A stretch of 46,457 nucleotides of DNA. Source: Corallochytrium limacisporum Hawaii. Its lineage: Eukaryota > Protista > Pluriformea. The DNA lies in contig PDIP01000074.1 in NCBI GenBank assembly GCA_002811645.1, positions 1 to 46,457 on the forward strand. Reading direction: 5' to 3'. A program made the position numbers and the translations under genes. Position 1 is the stretch's first letter. Each line of letters opens with the position of its first letter. The notes under the pieces were generated by a model. That model searched no databases and was not told where the DNA came from. It worked only from the letters and a program-made list of their open reading frames with translations. This document shows, one piece after another, positions 17,982 through 46,322 of this stretch.

Positions 17982-20102
17982 GGCTAGGAGAGTCGGCTTA
18001 GGTTCCGTTATGCTATATTATCGTATGTACAGTGCCTAAGCGTTCACAATGAAATGCGCATAACCTTGAAACTGTCGGTTCACACCACTTATCCTGTGAG
18101 CAGATTATCTCCCGGTTGTACCAAGGGTGTGTTGAATACCGTCCCGAGGTTAATTAATGTTTGGAATAGTACCGCACCCGACGATGTGGGCAATTCCACA
18201 AATACCAACACGTGATATCCAATAATTTAGATTAGAGTCCCAATTTTTCCACCGCAGTGCACGCGGGTGTGCAAAATCCAACCCTTCACGCACCGCTTCA
18301 TGTCTTGCTTTGGTTCCACGTAGCATCCACCGCAACCGATGCCAAGATTGAACCTCAAAGGCCACCTCCCAAAAAAAAAAACAATGCCAACCATCGCAGC
18401 TCAGCACGGCCCCGCAGTGGGCCCCCCGTTTTCCTCCCCTCTTGTCTGTCCTTCTCCTGACCCGGAGCTTAGTGCGCCAAAAATAATGCACGGGACAAAT
18501 TTTTTCCGTCGCTTAAAGGGGTAGGGACGAACGGGGGACCTGCCCCGTAAACACACACCACCACACACTTCGACAGGCGAGGGTACCGGACTCACTCAGC
18601 CCCACAACGGAGGGTGTCTCCCGGTGGTTGAGGTGATTTCAGTACTTCAGTACTGGATAAAAATTCCCCTCCGGTGAGGCGGGGAGGTTTGAGCGCCAGC
18701 AGAACAGGAAGGTTCCGGAGGGGGGGGGGGCCATAAACGCTCGCAAGCGCGAGCTCTTTCGGTGCGGAAGAGTGGACGCCACGCCAGGCTCCCATGTTCC
18801 ATATTGAAAGAACGGCTTAAAAGAGTCTCGACAGCATAAAACTGTGTCCCAGAACGGAAATGACGAACACACACCAATTTTCCCTGGTGGTCCCCCCGCC
18901 CCCCACAAGCCGTGCGCTGCCAAAAGAAAGCAAAAGATAAGGGAAAAATCCGCCCCCCCCCCCTCTCTTTTTTTCCAATCACCCACCCCATTTCAAAATA
19001 AGACCGGATATAAATATGCGAAACCGACAGCTTGCAGTGGATAGCTCCGTTACCCCCCCCCCCAGGGGGGTTCAGAGGCGGCGGGGGGAAGAGTGGAGGG
19101 AAGAAAACAAACGGATAACCGACTCCCGCGGAGCGGCTGGCCAAGGGTAAATGGGGGGAGTGACCGGATAGGTGGCTGGGTGATAGCTTGCGTTTGTCAT
19201 CGAATGGCTTGTATTGCTGCGAAGTGGCTTGTGTTTCGCGGATCCGTAGGGTATTTTATTCCTTCCCGTGGCATGCGGGGGGTGTTCTTTCAGCGGTGCT
19301 CTCTACCCATTTCAAGGGGAACGGAACATTGGCAGATTCGGGTCGGACGGTGAGAAAGTGCCCCGTACAACCCATATAGAAAAGATAACCTGAAGGGACC
19401 AGAAAAGGTTTTGGCTATGACAAAACGAAATCACCTGACCGGCAGCAAATTATCACTTGAGAGCGAGTACTATACTGCTGTGCCCAGCCCTTCCCTTCCC
19501 TACATTTCGTTCATCAAACCCGCCTCCTGTGCCACCTGGTTTGTGTTTAGTCCTGCAGTGTAATACTCTGAGGGGCACTGTGTATTTCTTCGTGTTCTTC
19601 ATCGTCAGCGGATGTACGCTATAATGGATATACTGTATTTTGGTCTGAGTTTTTGGATAGGTCGGTTTGGATATGTGGTGATACTTTCATTGGGCGGCGT
19701 GATTCTCGCCTGCCGGCTCTCGTTCGTTCGGACAGATCTTTCGGTGGGGGTGTGTGTCATATAAAGCAGGCAAACGGTCATCGGAACCTTGTGACGTGAG
19801 ACGAAGTTTTCATCGTAGTGAGGAGGACCACGGCTTCTCAACGCGGGTGTGGAATAGGTGTGGAACCTACAAGGTTTTTCCTTCGAATGGATCACGGACT
19901 AAAGTGTCCGGTACGTATGCAACCCGGCGAAGATAGGGTGAGAGAATTGCCACCCGACTGGTGGGTCTGTAGACCTGCGCACAGCGGGTACTACTGCACA
20001 CCGTACAATGCTGTGGGGACGGGCACTGGTGCAGCAGACGAGTAAAGGTCGCTGGCGTGTTCTAGTGCAGTATTTTTGACAGAGTTTGAAAACAACCCCG
20101 CG

Positions 20103-20798
20103 ATGGCAAGTCTGTTCCGACAACGACTGTCGAGCGGCTCGCGATGGGCAGCCAGTGTAGGACGAGGAGCACTGAAATCCCCGTCCAGCTACAAGAACGT
20201 CGGGTGTGGCGTAGGCACGTTTACATCCATTGGGTGGAACTCTCAGAATTTCATAATTCGTTGCGAGTCAAGTAAAACAGGCTTGACCGCCGAAGACATC
20301 GAAAACATGACTTTTTACGAATTTAAGTCGAAGACCCTCGAAGGCGAGGACTTCGACTTTGCCTCTCTGCAGGGCAAGACCGTTATTGTTGTCAACGTGG
20401 CCTCCAAGTGAGGCAAGACTGACATCAGTTACAAGCAACTCGTCGAACTTTATACCAAGTACCATGAGCATGGTCTGGAAATTATTGCCTTTCCCTGCAA
20501 CCAGTTTGGTGGTCAGGAACCCGGAACTCCCGCGGAAATTCGTGAGTTTGTGAAGGGCTACGGCGTTGAGTTCACCATGATGGAGAAGATCGACGTTAAG
20601 GGTAAGAACCAGGACCCTATTTACGCCTGGCTCACCCATGAGAAGAAGGGAATCCTTGGTACTGCTCTGATCAAGTGGAACTTTACAAAGTTCATTGTCG
20701 ATTCAAAGGGTACTGTTCTTAGGCGCCTCGGTCCTAATGAGGAGCCCAACAAGGGAGAGCCCTTGATCAAGGAACTCCTTGGCCTGGGTAAAGAGTAG
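20103..20798 (+). CDS. GPX: Selenocysteine glutathione peroxidase (GPx4/PHGPx-like), 231 aa, UGA=Sec at 20409-20411
   Basis: VNVASK-TGA-GKT continues in frame into AFPCNQFGGQEPG and IKWNFTKFIVD. The TGA is at the catalytic Cys/Sec position and a SECIS lies downstream. The N-terminus resembles a mitochondrial presequence. Confidence 0.95.
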
Positions 20799-21012
20799 GT
20801 CAATCACTAACTTTAGTGGACGGGGAATAGCACAACGCAAAAATGATTGAAAGCCCGCTGCAAGAGGCTGGTGTACTCACCACTGAGGACCGGGATCAGG
20901 TTTTGGAAACTGAAGGAATGCAACCTAAATGGGGCTGCAGTAAACGGGGTCACAATGAATTACGTGTTCGTTTGTAGGAATGTAGATCTCTCTGAAGCGG
21001 ACATTGTCATCA

Positions 21013-21089
21013 ATGCCTAGCTTCTTCCGTGACGAAGGTGGAGGAAACCTTACAAGGCTCCACTCTTCTGACACATTTGGGTCTGGTAT
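21013..21089 (+). promoter_or_regulatory. SECIS element (form 2, GUGA core) in the GPx 3' UTR
   Basis: GTGAC (21029-33); helix GAAG-GTGGAG pairs with CTCCAC-T-CTTC; unpaired AAA (21045-47); apical mini-stem CCT/AGG; 3' core TGAC (21069-72). Confidence 0.9.
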
Positions 21090-36730: not shown

Positions 36731-39202
36731 TTAAAGACGCTTCTTGGGAATTAAAACATCAGCGCGCAATCCATAGAATTGATGAGGCCAGTTGGCGGGA
36801 AGATCAGACCTCGCCGGTGTGAACAGCCATCCAATGTGCTCGCGACATTGACGGCATTCCGCGATGGTCCACGCGTAGCCCGGGAACCACGAATGCTCGC
36901 TGACAGCTTCTCCCGAAAACAGTAGATTTTGCGCGTCACGGAATGTAATGGTGGAGTGAATAACTCCACCTGAATTCACAAACACATTCTGGGGTCCTTC
37001 CTGGGTCATTGTAAACACATCTTTGTGTAACGCGATAACGTTATCACAGCGATGGAAATACGCTTCCGCCTCCTTGGCAAGGTTCAACAAGAAACGCAAT
37101 CTCTGAACTGGTTCCCCGAGGAGCAAAAAGTACATTCGTTCTCGATCGTTCATTCGCACGTGTCGCGCCAGCCAGTACGACAACGTCGTGGGATGTTCCA
37201 GTGGCATATCCCGCAATGACTGGGCATCGAATGATGGGCTCTCCCGTAGATAATTCATCAATTCGCCTACCAGATAGTTAAAGTCATATTCGCGGTAGAT
37301 GAAGGATGGCACTGGACTCAGAGACATCCGATACCATTTCTGGCGATCAATAACGGACTGGACGGACCGATTCAGACTCTTATCCCGCAGTGTACTTTCC
37401 CGCTCCCTTGAGGTCTGTCTGGTGTCCGGTACATTTGTGGGCATATACTTCCGGGATGACCCAGCAATTTCTCGTGGCAGCCGTCTCGGCAAGTGATCCC
37501 TGAGAGCTACTACACGCACAAGACGCTCACCATTCCCAGATACTCTCATACCAACCATATATACCCGCTGACGTACTGTGGTCACCACTCGCATCTGTCT
37601 GGTTCCATGGAGTGTTGCGTTTTCGTAGACCATCCCCTGGCTCATTGTCTGTGAGTCAAACTCTTCGCTATCGTTATGATCAACCGACGTGCGTCTGTCG
37701 CCATCCTGATCGGATAAAAAACTGTCATCATCGACATCTTCATCTCCGACTTCGGCGCTGGCCCCCGGGTTCCTATTGGTCTCACCTGGACAATCCTGTT
37801 CCTGACCGTCGACTTCGTTCAACGAAATTCTATGGTCGTGTTGCACACCATATTCGAGCTGTCTTGAGCGTGCTTCGATGGCCCGATTAAGAGGATGGTC
37901 CACGCCAGGGGATACGAAGAGATTCCGTCTCAAGAGCGCCAAGTTTAGTAGCACGTGGGTCCGAGAGCGAGTTGGGTTGTTACGCAACATCATCATTCCC
38001 TCCACTATTTCGTCCAGTCGAGTTGCAATCATTGACCGCTGATGAGCGTTGTACAAATCCTCTTGCTCCGGGTGACCGAAGATGTCTCGCCGGAGCGACC
38101 GGCGCATGCGAGTCCTTAAACGTCGCTCGCGTGCTCGCTGCTCTGGGTCTGGATGGAAAACACCTTGAAGTTCTAAGCTGACGCCCTGACGAACAAAAAT
38201 TTGGTGACTGTCCATGGGGTTTCGACGTCTACCAATTTGAGCGAAATATCTGTCATTTTCCACCATCTGCGTGTATTCGCTGTAGGGTTCAAGGTGGCGC
38301 CCGTTGTCGTTCATTTCCTGTACAAATTCAAGCTGCGATTGCTCATCGTTGATCAGGCTGGGAAGTTTTCGTTCACTGTGTTCCCACCAGAAAGGCCACC
38401 CAACATCAGTGTCGAGTAGAACAATGGTTCCCGACGGATTTCTGCACCGGTCCATGGCCATTTCCATGCGATCCATTAATGATCCCTCTGTCAGAATCAA
38501 CGGAAATGTCTGACCGGGAAGGGGCATTAGGATGCCACCCAGTTCGCTGGTGAGAAGAGCCGGCAATTCCATGGGTTCAGATGTAGGTATGATGCTTACC
38601 GTGCGGTCCAAAATCTCTTGCATCGTTCCAAGGTACATGTGTGGACCAGACCCCCGGTAAATGGGCCCGGTCAAGATTGGCAAGGGCGATGGTATTCGAG
38701 TACTGAGGTCACTATTGATGCCTTCGCGAGACGATGGCACTACTAAGCTCAGTCGATCTGCAGCAGTATGTGTGCTTGCCGCCCCACTACCCATCTCTTG
38801 GGCTGTCCTTGTTGCAGAATTTTGCCTAGACGCATCCCCTGTCATATCCTCGCGAATGGCGATCGCCCAGGATACAAGAGCCAAAATATCATTGAAACTT
38901 TGAGAGGTTATTGAGCGCTCTTGCCCGTTGTTTGTGTTCGTATTATTTCTGTGTCCGTTGCCGTTGTCATTGTCAGACATATCTGCGCGGGAAGATGGCA
39001 ACTGCTGTCCCACGGCCGAGCGTGACCAGAATATACTCTGCCAATCATCACGAGACGTGTCCTCCATTTCCTCTTCCATAAGATCTGCGGACAGCTCATC
39101 CGGCGCATCAACTAACTCTCCAGCAGAATTCGGGTCAGACGGACTAGACCTGGCGCTGCTAGCGTCGCGCAGCGGCTGTGGTTCGTCCTCATGGTGGACC
39201 AT
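36731..39202 (-). CDS. CRBN: Cereblon homolog (split Lon-N-like region plus C-terminal CULT domain)
   Basis: HMYLG..LMPLPGQTFPL, LSYWLA..L..QRLR, and CULT motifs FVNSGGVIH..EHSWFPGYAWTIAECRQCREHIGWLF..FYGL. Confidence 0.88.
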   Translation of the reverse strand: MVHHEDEPQPLRDASSARSSPSDPNSAGELVDAPDELSADLMEEEMEDTSRDDWQSIFWSRSAVGQQLPSSRADMSDNDNGNGHRNNTNTNNGQERSITSQSFNDILALVSWAIAIREDMTGDASRQNSATRTAQEMGSGAASTHTAADRLSLVVPSSREGINSDLSTRIPSPLPILTGPIYRGSGPHMYLGTMQEILDRTVSIIPTSEPMELPALLTSELGGILMPLPGQTFPLILTEGSLMDRMEMAMDRCRNPSGTIVLLDTDVGWPFWWEHSERKLPSLINDEQSQLEFVQEMNDNGRHLEPYSEYTQMVENDRYFAQIGRRRNPMDSHQIFVRQGVSLELQGVFHPDPEQRARERRLRTRMRRSLRRDIFGHPEQEDLYNAHQRSMIATRLDEIVEGMMMLRNNPTRSRTHVLLNLALLRRNLFVSPGVDHPLNRAIEARSRQLEYGVQHDHRISLNEVDGQEQDCPGETNRNPGASAEVGDEDVDDDSFLSDQDGDRRTSVDHNDSEEFDSQTMSQGMVYENATLHGTRQMRVVTTVRQRVYMVGMRVSGNGERLVRVVALRDHLPRRLPREIAGSSRKYMPTNVPDTRQTSRERESTLRDKSLNRSVQSVIDRQKWYRMSLSPVPSFIYREYDFNYLVGELMNYLRESPSFDAQSLRDMPLEHPTTLSYWLARHVRMNDRERMYFLLLGEPVQRLRFLLNLAKEAEAYFHRCDNVIALHKDVFTMTQEGPQNVFVNSGGVIHSTITFRDAQNLLFSGEAVSEHSWFPGYAWTIAECRQCREHIGWLFTPARSDLPANWPHQFYGLRADVLIPKKRL

Positions 39203-43682: not shown

Positions 43683-46322
43683 ATGGATTTGCTAAACATC
43701 CAATGCGCCCAGATTCCCGCCACCCCGGGCGAAGAGGAAGACGGCGTGCGCTTTTCGTTTTGGATTAACAACTATGCCACTATACTCGAAAATGAGGTCC
43801 GTCTAAATCCGTCAATGCTTGCTATGGTCGCTGTTCGGACAGCATATCAACAGGTTCATTCGGGTGCCAAAGAAGATCTGTTGGTAGTTCCGGCAGAAGG
43901 CTCAGCTGAGTCTCCACGGGACTCATTGCAACTGCATGCGAGCCATGCCGAATTTTTCGCACGTCTTTTAGTAATTTGGGATGCTACAGAAGTCGGCATT
44001 GATGACTGTAGGCAATCAATTGGGCTTTGTTTGGCTGAAATCCTAAAAATTTATGGCGAAACGCATCGGGATAGTGAAGATAATGCGGCAGAGTTCTTGT
44101 CATATGCCTCTGGCTTACGTGTTGCTCTCGAGAGCAGAGCGATCATGGAAGTACCAGTCCACCAGATAGTTTGTGAGCTCGAACGTAAAGCACTTCTCTA
44201 CGCAGAATGCTGTTCTAAACTACGACTGACACCGAAGCTGTCTGCACCCGACGTTATTGCGGCAAGTCACGAGGATATTATGGTTTCGTGCTTGCTGCAA
44301 ATGCCTGCCAACCTATGTGATAGTCAGGACTTCTTGCGTAACTTGCTTACAATGGTACGAGACTATGACATTGATCTACCTTCTCTTTTTGAGACCGTGC
44401 TGGTTAAAGATGATACGTGTTTGGCACCTTTGGTTGAGCCCTTACAATCTCTAGAAAACGTGAAGCTATTGATGGACGTCCTGACGGTATTTTCAAGATA
44501 TTTGCCGTGGGATAGGTTTCGGGCTCTCGATCGTGCATCACACTCGCTGCTTGAAAATATGAAGAAGAAGGGTCATACAGGACCAATGCCTGTGTGTATC
44601 ATTGCTCGGGCAGTGAGGGCACTGGCGGCAAAGTATGGGGTTTCAAATGGGCTTGTCTGGCATTCACGCCATGGACCACAGCGACTGGCACGCTTTATTG
44701 CCACACGTGGCCTTGGATGTGGGACCTGTCTACGAGATGCGGTTCGAGTTTTGCAATGGGCTGGTGTGCACTCTGCTATTGAATCAACTCTCCATGCACA
44801 TATCGCAGCCCTGATCTGGTCACCGCAGCATACAGAGCTGCGACCAGCTCTTTGGGAGTCTGTTAATTTGTTCCTAAAGACCACCGCCGCTGATGATGCC
44901 ACTGCATTAAATGAATTGCTGGGCACTGTAGACAGCACACTGGAGCAAGTCTTTACGCAAACGACATCCATGTACAGAGACTGGACTGTGACTGTAGGCA
45001 ACCTGGAGGTCCTTCTCTCCAATGTCGATGTTCAAGGTAACAAAAATTTCGTGGAGATGGTCGTTGGGCATATTCGCCGGTTCAAGTCCTTGAAATGGAT
45101 CTCGGAGGCCCCAAGTCATCACCAGATGCACTTGTGCATCCAAATTGCGCGCAGACACTACAGTGACGTACGAGCTCAAGACAAACCCTTTGTCTTCCCG
45201 GCCGCTGTGCTCCATATTTGGTTTAAGGACGGGCTATTTAGTAAGTACATCTACCACATGGCGATTGTCCTTGACTTGTCGCCCCTGCAGGCAATTGAGC
45301 TTATTCAAGCTACTTTACCCGGTGCTGTTAGTGCCAAAATGCCTCTCAACTATGCTACTGATGTTGTAGATTCACTGCTTGAATTTGAGGATCAAGCAGA
45401 ATATGTCGGAAAATCTGCTATAGTTCTTACCACGTTCATGTTCTTGTGTCACACATCAGGACGATCGGCTTCAGACATTAAGGCTATCCTGGATGATCGT
45501 GTAAAAGTGTTTTTGGCCCAAAATCTTGCGGAAAGGGATATGGAGCTACTCTGCCGGTTGTTGCGCCTTGAGGATCTTGAGGATGGTCATTTACGGACTG
45601 TTCTTGCCAGAGAAGCCCTAGAGACCATCGGCTACGAAAACCATGGACTCAAGGGCCATGCAGCAGAGGATGACAGTGGTCTGATTGCTATGATTTCAGC
45701 GCAGGAATGTTGCGAGTCAAGTCGTAGAATTCGTTATGCCATGCAAAGTATTTGGTCTGATTTTGTCTTCGCCCCCACGGGGCATGCCACTAAAAAAGTG
45801 CAGACTTTGCTGCACATGGCAACTGAAGAATCGGAAGAGGACTCAGTTTGTTTGCAGCATGTCTGGGTTCGCCTAATCCGAAGGCATTCAAAGGCACCAC
45901 TGGAAGACAGAATGGTTAAGTTTTTGTCCTCCATCACTGCAGACATGAATGCTCTACTTCATGAGGACAACAATCATCGTGAGAGCCGCACTCAGTACAG
46001 ATTGTATTTGAAACATCTGTGGCTCAACGAATTACTCCTCGCTGGACTTGTCACAGATCCGGAGAAAGGTATCAAACTGCTGTCACGGAAGCCACAACAA
46101 GCCATTTTGAAATTGATGAACACCACCATTTCACAGCGATCACAATTCTCTGATGTGCACGCCGATCTCTTCTCCGCTGGTGACCAGATTGTGCCGGCTA
46201 TTTCTTTTGAGCAAAACGCAGCGGATAAGGGTCGAACTCTATCGGATAATTTGGCGATGTACGTGTCATCTCTGTCACTGGATGCAGCAGTAGTACACAC
46301 TATCCTCCAACATAACTCATAG
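43683..46322 (+). CDS. Large Leu/Ala-rich, probably alpha-helical protein of unknown function (879 aa)
   Basis: 2.6-kb uninterrupted ORF; no family recognised. Confidence 0.8.
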   Translation: MDLLNIQCAQIPATPGEEEDGVRFSFWINNYATILENEVRLNPSMLAMVAVRTAYQQVHSGAKEDLLVVPAEGSAESPRDSLQLHASHAEFFARLLVIWDATEVGIDDCRQSIGLCLAEILKIYGETHRDSEDNAAEFLSYASGLRVALESRAIMEVPVHQIVCELERKALLYAECCSKLRLTPKLSAPDVIAASHEDIMVSCLLQMPANLCDSQDFLRNLLTMVRDYDIDLPSLFETVLVKDDTCLAPLVEPLQSLENVKLLMDVLTVFSRYLPWDRFRALDRASHSLLENMKKKGHTGPMPVCIIARAVRALAAKYGVSNGLVWHSRHGPQRLARFIATRGLGCGTCLRDAVRVLQWAGVHSAIESTLHAHIAALIWSPQHTELRPALWESVNLFLKTTAADDATALNELLGTVDSTLEQVFTQTTSMYRDWTVTVGNLEVLLSNVDVQGNKNFVEMVVGHIRRFKSLKWISEAPSHHQMHLCIQIARRHYSDVRAQDKPFVFPAAVLHIWFKDGLFSKYIYHMAIVLDLSPLQAIELIQATLPGAVSAKMPLNYATDVVDSLLEFEDQAEYVGKSAIVLTTFMFLCHTSGRSASDIKAILDDRVKVFLAQNLAERDMELLCRLLRLEDLEDGHLRTVLAREALETIGYENHGLKGHAAEDDSGLIAMISAQECCESSRRIRYAMQSIWSDFVFAPTGHATKKVQTLLHMATEESEEDSVCLQHVWVRLIRRHSKAPLEDRMVKFLSSITADMNALLHEDNNHRESRTQYRLYLKHLWLNELLLAGLVTDPEKGIKLLSRKPQQAILKLMNTTISQRSQFSDVHADLFSAGDQIVPAISFEQNAADKGRTLSDNLAMYVSSLSLDAAVVHTILQHNS

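Follow-up and report, generated by a model that had tools for sequence, protein, structure and literature searches.

A gene for a selenium-dependent glutathione peroxidase (GPx) is predicted in the unicellular holozoan Corallochytrium limacisporum, and its in-frame codon UGA 20409 is very probably decoded as selenocysteine (Sec). The gene lies on the forward strand of the window, i.e., the whole 46,457-nt stretch of DNA that was analysed (contig PDIP01000074.1, positions 1 to 46,457). The reading favoured with high confidence is that the gene has no introns and codes for a selenium glutathione peroxidase that is monomeric and GPx4-like; no other GPx was found in this organism. The features on which this reading is based are as follows.

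20103..20306, + strand: 68-codon in-frame extension from ATG 20103, a candidate mitochondrial presequence by its composition, giving a long form of 231 aa.
20307..20798, + strand: core GPx coding sequence from the second ATG to TAG, short form of 163 aa, with Pfam GSHPx matches on both sides of the UGA.
20408..20428, + strand: GT...AG stretch cut as a 21-nt intron by the public model Clim_evm9s226 (model compared with the window translation).
20409..20411, + strand: predicted selenocysteine U35 (short-form numbering), the catalytic residue, from the in-frame TGA, translation, Pfam and homologues.
20514..20516, + strand: Gln70 of the catalytic tetrad, from translation and GPx4 alignment.
20550..20552, + strand: Val82, 12 residues after Gln70, where thioredoxin-dependent Cys-GPx have their resolving Cys.
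20676..20681, + strand: Trp124-Asn125 of the catalytic tetrad, from a KWNF motif aligned to GPx4 W136/N137.
21029..21072, + strand: predicted type II SECIS, core to core, from fold, Rfam and a pattern rule.

Positions 20076-20798 of the window translate as a single frame in which TGA 20409-20411 is the sole internal stop (VVNVASK*GKT, the asterisk marking the TGA, followed by FPCNQFGGQEPG), and which ends at TAG 20796-20798. In the first-pass annotation, two listed open reading frames, the second starting at GTG 20550, were taken to be one frame split only by a TGA at the catalytic site, and the translation bears this out. The TGA falls exactly on the catalytic position, since the pieces flanking it match positions 1-32 and 34-107 of Pfam GSHPx (PF00255) and position 33 is the one missing. 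Read through the TGA, the frame scores 133.5 bits against this family, over the curated cut-off, and a genome-wide family search gave no other GSHPx match in C. limacisporum. In comparison with homologues, the UGA is aligned to Cys or Sec, and its flanks are conserved. Most full-length matches carry Cys at this place. Three foreign homologues whose contigs were fetched (L057, L058 and L059) have a TGA at the equivalent place, each with a SECIS-like stem downstream of it.

The catalytic tetrad, defined as U/C, Q, W and N (PMC7409322), is complete in the translation and in its alignment to GPx4 (U35, Q70, W124 and N125). A resolving-Cys position has been described in Cys-GPx (PMC7409322), and thioredoxin-dependent two-Cys enzymes have this residue 8-12 residues after the catalytic Gln. 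The predicted protein is not of that type, with TGA and Val82 in the two places; for comparison, Cys occupies both the catalytic and the resolving site in 67 of 120 matches. Alignment to human GPx4 involves gaps of 2 and 1 residues only, and the protein therefore lacks an oligomerisation insert. Absence of both this insert and the resolving Cys is the anatomy of GPx4/PHGPx. Protein searches were run with the pieces before and after the TGA taken separately. The best natural PDB matches are to mammalian GPx4 (E 1.6e-37), with yeast Hyr1 at 1.5e-33 and GPx1 at 4e-11. Alignment to GPx4 orthologs had been proposed as a check on the Sec reading; in it, the U-G-K-T motif and Q/W/N align, and mammalian GPx4 is the closest solved natural protein. 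A quick IQ-TREE phylogeny, based on an incomplete tree search with few named references and uninformative on orthology or gene transfer, gave the protein a long branch within a mostly Cys-type group without resolution, and did not place it with animal GPx4. In a published tree, non-metazoan GPx are paraphyletic and one Monosiga sequence falls in the PHGPx/GPx4 group (PMC9925728). The predicted enzyme is GPx4-like by anatomy, and the tree leaves its orthology with animal GPx4 unproven.

As TGA is one base away from the Cys codons TGC and TGT, the gene could be a pseudogene with a mutated Cys codon, or the codon could have been mis-read in the assembly. Such an origin of the TGA is highly improbable, however. 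The GPx frame has no lesion other than the TGA, codon bias before and after it exceeds the average of the genome, and the lack of a resolving Cys is as fits a Sec enzyme. The SECIS, the Sec machinery and the UGA of the homologues also argue against it.

The protein shares 99% identity with EukProt Clim_evm9s226 from C. limacisporum, a public model of 156 aa that reads VASNYKQ. In this model, K-U-G-K-T-D-I-S of the translation is replaced by N, and the catalytic codon is lost. Misannotation by gene callers had been predicted in the first-pass annotation and has indeed occurred, with the TGA removed as a 21-nt pseudo-intron. If the intron were real, the product would be a GPx fold of 156 aa with neither Sec nor Cys at the catalytic site; alternatively, both forms could be made, splicing being a low-selenium bypass. 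The stretch does have GT...AG ends, a GTGAG 5′ site, CTGAC near its 3′ end and a length that is a multiple of three, and the public model includes the intron. But with its removal the only GPx would lose its catalytic residue and yet keep Q/W/N intact, and a SECIS lies downstream. In addition, the genome of C. limacisporum (24.1 Mb in 286 contigs) is almost intronless, with about 0.0 introns per CDS kb (PMC5560861). A genuine intron is accordingly rated very unlikely, if marginally less so than a damaged or mis-read Cys codon. Because positions 20408-20428 encode the conserved U-G-K-T motif in the alignment to GPx4, they are in all likelihood coding, and the intron would be a gene-caller artefact. 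This corrects a public model in which the sole GPx of the organism had lost its active site.

The predicted SECIS lies downstream of the GPx frame on the same strand, starting 231 nt past the stop TAG and 618 nt past the UGA. Its core consists of G21029 and UGAC 21030-33 opposite UGAC 21069-72, and is followed by a 10-bp helix II (21034-43/21058-68) with a bulged U21064, AAA at 21045-47 and a 3-bp apical stem (21048-50/21055-57). A weak helix I is found at about 21015-20/21077-82. The element thus has the type II layout of a 5′ UGAN, a 3′ GA quartet, a helix II of about 10-11 bp, an unpaired AA and an extra apical stem, and agrees with the form-2 SECIS with UGAC cores, AAA and mini apical stem that had been described from the sequence. 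The last base of its 3′ core is C, versus A/U in the KGAW consensus (PMC3753652). Of all 4227 Rfam families, SECIS_1 matches the 3′ region best, at 23.8 bits (E 0.051 across the families); its gathering score is 35, and at gathering score Rfam has no match in the window. The fold has a z-score of -2.75 for the element alone and only about -1 with its flanks. A TGAY...YGA rule, which fits ten other SECIS of the genome, is matched at 2 places in the 93 kb of the window (both strands), i.e., the GPx SECIS and one site without a gene. Across the genome, the core-AA-core pattern by itself is no more frequent than by chance (1330 matches versus 1494 in a control), so that the motif counts only in conjunction with position and fold. 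On these grounds, the predicted type II SECIS of the GPx gene is taken to be more than a chance stem-loop, and of a known kind.

The emphasis of the first-pass annotation on a “non-canonical” GUGA core was overstated. The conserved SECIS quartet is UGAN/KGAW (PMC3753652), and G21029 is the base preceding it. GUGA_AA predominates in Chlamydomonas and Ostreococcus and occurs in 12 of 21 sponge SECIS, Aq.Gpx included (PMC3473315). In Corallochytrium, the base before the core is A in nine of 11 SECIS, G in one (GPx) and C in one. GUGA is a known SECIS variant and not a new signal.

A complete Sec machinery had been held to follow from the reading of the gene, and most of its components were found. 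The genome encodes a tRNA-Sec with a UCA anticodon that is over the Rfam cut-off and has tRNA-Sec arms, SepSecS (E 3e-111), SPS2 with an in-frame TGA in KGUGCK and its own SECIS, eEFSec (E 4e-152 to the human protein) and SBP2 (E 1e-28 to the human protein, with both conserved regions). The PSTK candidate is weak: it has a P-loop and TIGR03575 as its sole family match (E 1e-12), at 48 bits versus a cut-off of 382, and had no match in PDB. In ten more genes, a UGA falls on a known Sec site and the stop is followed, at a distance of 51-335 nt, by a SECIS-like element. They are SPS2, SelW, two thioredoxin reductases (ending in GCUG), SelU, FrnE, a SelJ-like hydrolase, an AhpC-like gene, MsrA and SelK. 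The SelU, FrnE, SelJ and AhpC genes were found by family search. SelO ends in a CxxCSS-like Cys form without UGA. A search for Sep15/SelM gave no match; its control was silent too, and nothing follows from it. Taken together, the Pfam halves around the TGA, the SECIS and the decoding genes uphold the original reading of the gene as a Sec-GPx.

Two further observations concern related families. A second Rdx-family gene (L015:1429-1773; G000:C234) has CPGC in place of Sec and no SECIS, and resembles bacterial SelT/SelW/SelH-family proteins. At least seven DSBA/FrnE-family matches (L064-L070) are present, only one of which (L065) has Sec; several are in open frames of about 450 aa, and one frame has two such domains.

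The UGA might also be read in another manner, through genome-wide reassignment to Trp or Cys or through leaky read-through, with the stem-loop being incidental. A looser finder gave 8 other matches in the window, and with it SECIS-like stems occur by chance about once per 12 kb. Nevertheless, ordinary genes such as SepSecS and the peroxiredoxin-family genes end with TGA at their expected ends, family matches cross a TGA only at known Sec sites with a SECIS after each, and the UCA tRNA has the arms of tRNA-Sec. Like the pseudogene, this alternative is given very little weight, and decoding of the UGA as Sec is the preferred reading.

Only one tRNA-Sec gene was found (L002:1501-1644; G000:C110:371719-371862, +), on another contig than GPx. 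Its exons were paired by coordinates, and the unspliced precursor was folded. A contiguous reading breaks seven of the nine acceptor pairs; the true acceptor 3′ strand is 56 nt further on (L002:1635-1643), with eight pairs and a U.U mismatch, G73 and a T run. A U.U mismatch in the acceptor is typical of eukaryotic tRNA-Sec. The 56-nt insert (L002:1574-1629) is located at T-loop position 59/60, in a strict archaeal-type bulge-helix-bulge. Here, the T stem (1564-67/1631-34) is joined by a 4-bp helix (1568-71/1624-27), two 3-nt bulges (1572-74 and 1628-30) and an outer helix (1575-78/1620-23). In the minimum free energy fold of the precursor the acceptor ends pair, and the bulge-helix-bulge motif does not appear. 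Because eleven Sec genes are intact, it is argued that this predicted intron is spliced, provided that no intact tRNA-Sec copy was missed. Since the only tRNA-Sec gene found is split, GPx synthesis would then need bulge-helix-bulge splicing. Introns in tRNA-Sec are known from Lokiarchaeota, with 31 nt in the T loop (PMC4989117), and from Daphnia, in the anticodon loop (PMC5330540). The position in Corallochytrium matches that of Lokiarchaeota, whereas the host molecule here is a eukaryotic 9/4-fold tRNA-Sec, with an intron of 56 nt.

The SECIS elements of the genome share a further peculiarity. When ten pairs above the core were scored in each SECIS without a gap, with a 5′ bulge or with a 3′ bulge, pairing in nine of the 11 was much improved by a bulge of 1-11 nt placed in the 3′ strand, 3-6 bp up from the core. 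Scores for these nine (L005, L016, L018, L061, L065, L073, L075, L076 and window 21029-21072) were 15-20 with the 3′ bulge versus -1 to 11 without a gap, and were also higher than with a 5′ bulge. The GPx element is at the 1-nt end of the bulge range, and several of the nine also have long apical extensions. Of the remaining two, one has small bulges on both strands and the other symmetric mismatches. The three foreign GPx SECIS (L057, L058 and L059) pair best without a gap. At genome scale, Rfam SECIS_1 found no element of the Corallochytrium genome, and a MAFFT alignment of the nine other SECIS was too poor for a covariance model. Helix II tunes recoding in human SECIS (PMC2761289), bent helices are filtered out by SECISearch3, and lineage-specific SECIS forms are known in Ostreococcus and Toxoplasma (PMC3753652). 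The 3′-strand bulge of helix II is a candidate lineage trait, the foreign comparison comprising three GPx elements only. Tentatively, and with somewhat less than even probability, the bulged SECIS may be a lineage-specific form kept by selection, perhaps read by a divergent SBP2 or setting a recoding hierarchy, which together with the T-loop-spliced tRNA-Sec would constitute a Sec-decoding variant missed by standard SECIS models. In that case, GPx would serve as a simple reporter of the variant. Separately, a SECIS-like element of the second thioredoxin reductase (L026:562-632, - strand; G000:C233), whose gene ends in GCUG, has CUGA and an AAA placed unusually far up.

Upstream of the core GPx sequence, the first 54 aa of the extension include 5 R, 2 K and 10 S and no D/E. 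A comparable extension arises in 0.2% of shuffles, by criteria set after the extension had been seen. Its codon-usage score is intermediate and does not decide its coding status. In-frame extensions are also present in two of the foreign homologues, L057 and L058. The use of two starts, yielding a cytosolic form of 163 aa and a form of 231 aa with a mitochondrial presequence, is modestly favoured by these features.

The neighbours of GPx in the window are eukaryotic housekeeping genes, i.e., BOP1, SNF7, a VAP-like protein, a mitochondrial carrier and a thiolase. Elsewhere in the window, a gene-free stretch at 2330-2970 forms a long imperfect hairpin with arms of 82, 62 and 26 nt that are 81-87% complementary (-305 kcal/mol; z = -23 versus 20 shuffles). 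The hairpin has no match in Rfam; either a hairpin-RNA/siRNA precursor or a foldback duplication that has decayed could account for it. It overlaps a 125-nt direct repeat (2202-2327/2581-2707, about 80% identical, 380 nt apart), the second copy of which is in its loop. The two copies share an identical 20-mer, which has no further occurrence in the genome. The first copy resembles a SECIS, and the SECIS-like element at 2234-2300 was rejected as it has no Sec ORF upstream and lies inside this local duplication. Two long ORFs of 823 and 879 aa, at 36731-39202 (-) and 43683-46322 (+), have a weak C-terminal Yippee/Mis18 match only, or no Pfam match.

By analogy with established eukaryotic Sec decoding, SBP2 would bind the kink-turn of the SECIS, eEFSec would deliver Sec-tRNA-Sec at UGA 20409, and translation would continue to TAG 20796. 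As is usual in the family, the resulting selenol would be expected to reduce H2O2 and probably lipid hydroperoxides. Given the lack of a resolving Cys, glutathione or other thiols would regenerate it, and not the route via an internal disulfide and thioredoxin.

Sec-GPx and SECIS of this type are already well known, and a specialist would expect them. What the gene contributes is a GPx4-like enzyme of the Sec type from a holozoan lineage that branched off early; this fits, without proving, a pre-animal Sec-GPx4-like enzyme with cytosolic and mitochondrial forms. Less expected are the bulged SECIS and the T-loop intron of tRNA-Sec, which are genome-wide features located mostly outside the window and for which GPx offers an easily assayed read-out. 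A literature search of incomplete coverage found no work joining Corallochytrium with selenoproteins or selenocysteine, and a prior annotation is possible.

Among known systems, the gene is most readily compared with animal GPx4/PHGPx (human; PDB 6hkq and 5h5q). Both have the U/Q/W/N tetrad with equal U-to-Q spacing, the U-G-K-T motif and a type II SECIS, and neither has an oligomerisation insert or a resolving Cys. Lys and Arg are conserved at the places of human K48, K135 and R152, residues that, like K125, have a role in the human enzyme. Two in-frame starts are also a probable likeness, since mammalian GPx4 makes its cytosolic and mitochondrial isoforms in this way. In contrast to animal GPx4, the Corallochytrium gene is intronless, the loop with human K125 is two residues shorter, G rather than A precedes the SECIS core, and helix II is bulged. 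The Cys-GPx of yeast (Hyr1/Gpx3), plants and trypanosomes (PDB 3cmi, 2p5q and 2vup) score only somewhat below GPx4 and share the monomeric GPx fold and Q/W/N. They differ in having a catalytic and a resolving Cys and in using thioredoxin, whereas Sec and Val are found here. Finally, sponge Aq.Gpx likewise represents a Sec-GPx with a GUGA_AA SECIS in an early-branching holozoan lineage (PMC3473315), although most SECIS of the sponge and of the two algae named above are of the GUGA form, which is the exception in Corallochytrium.
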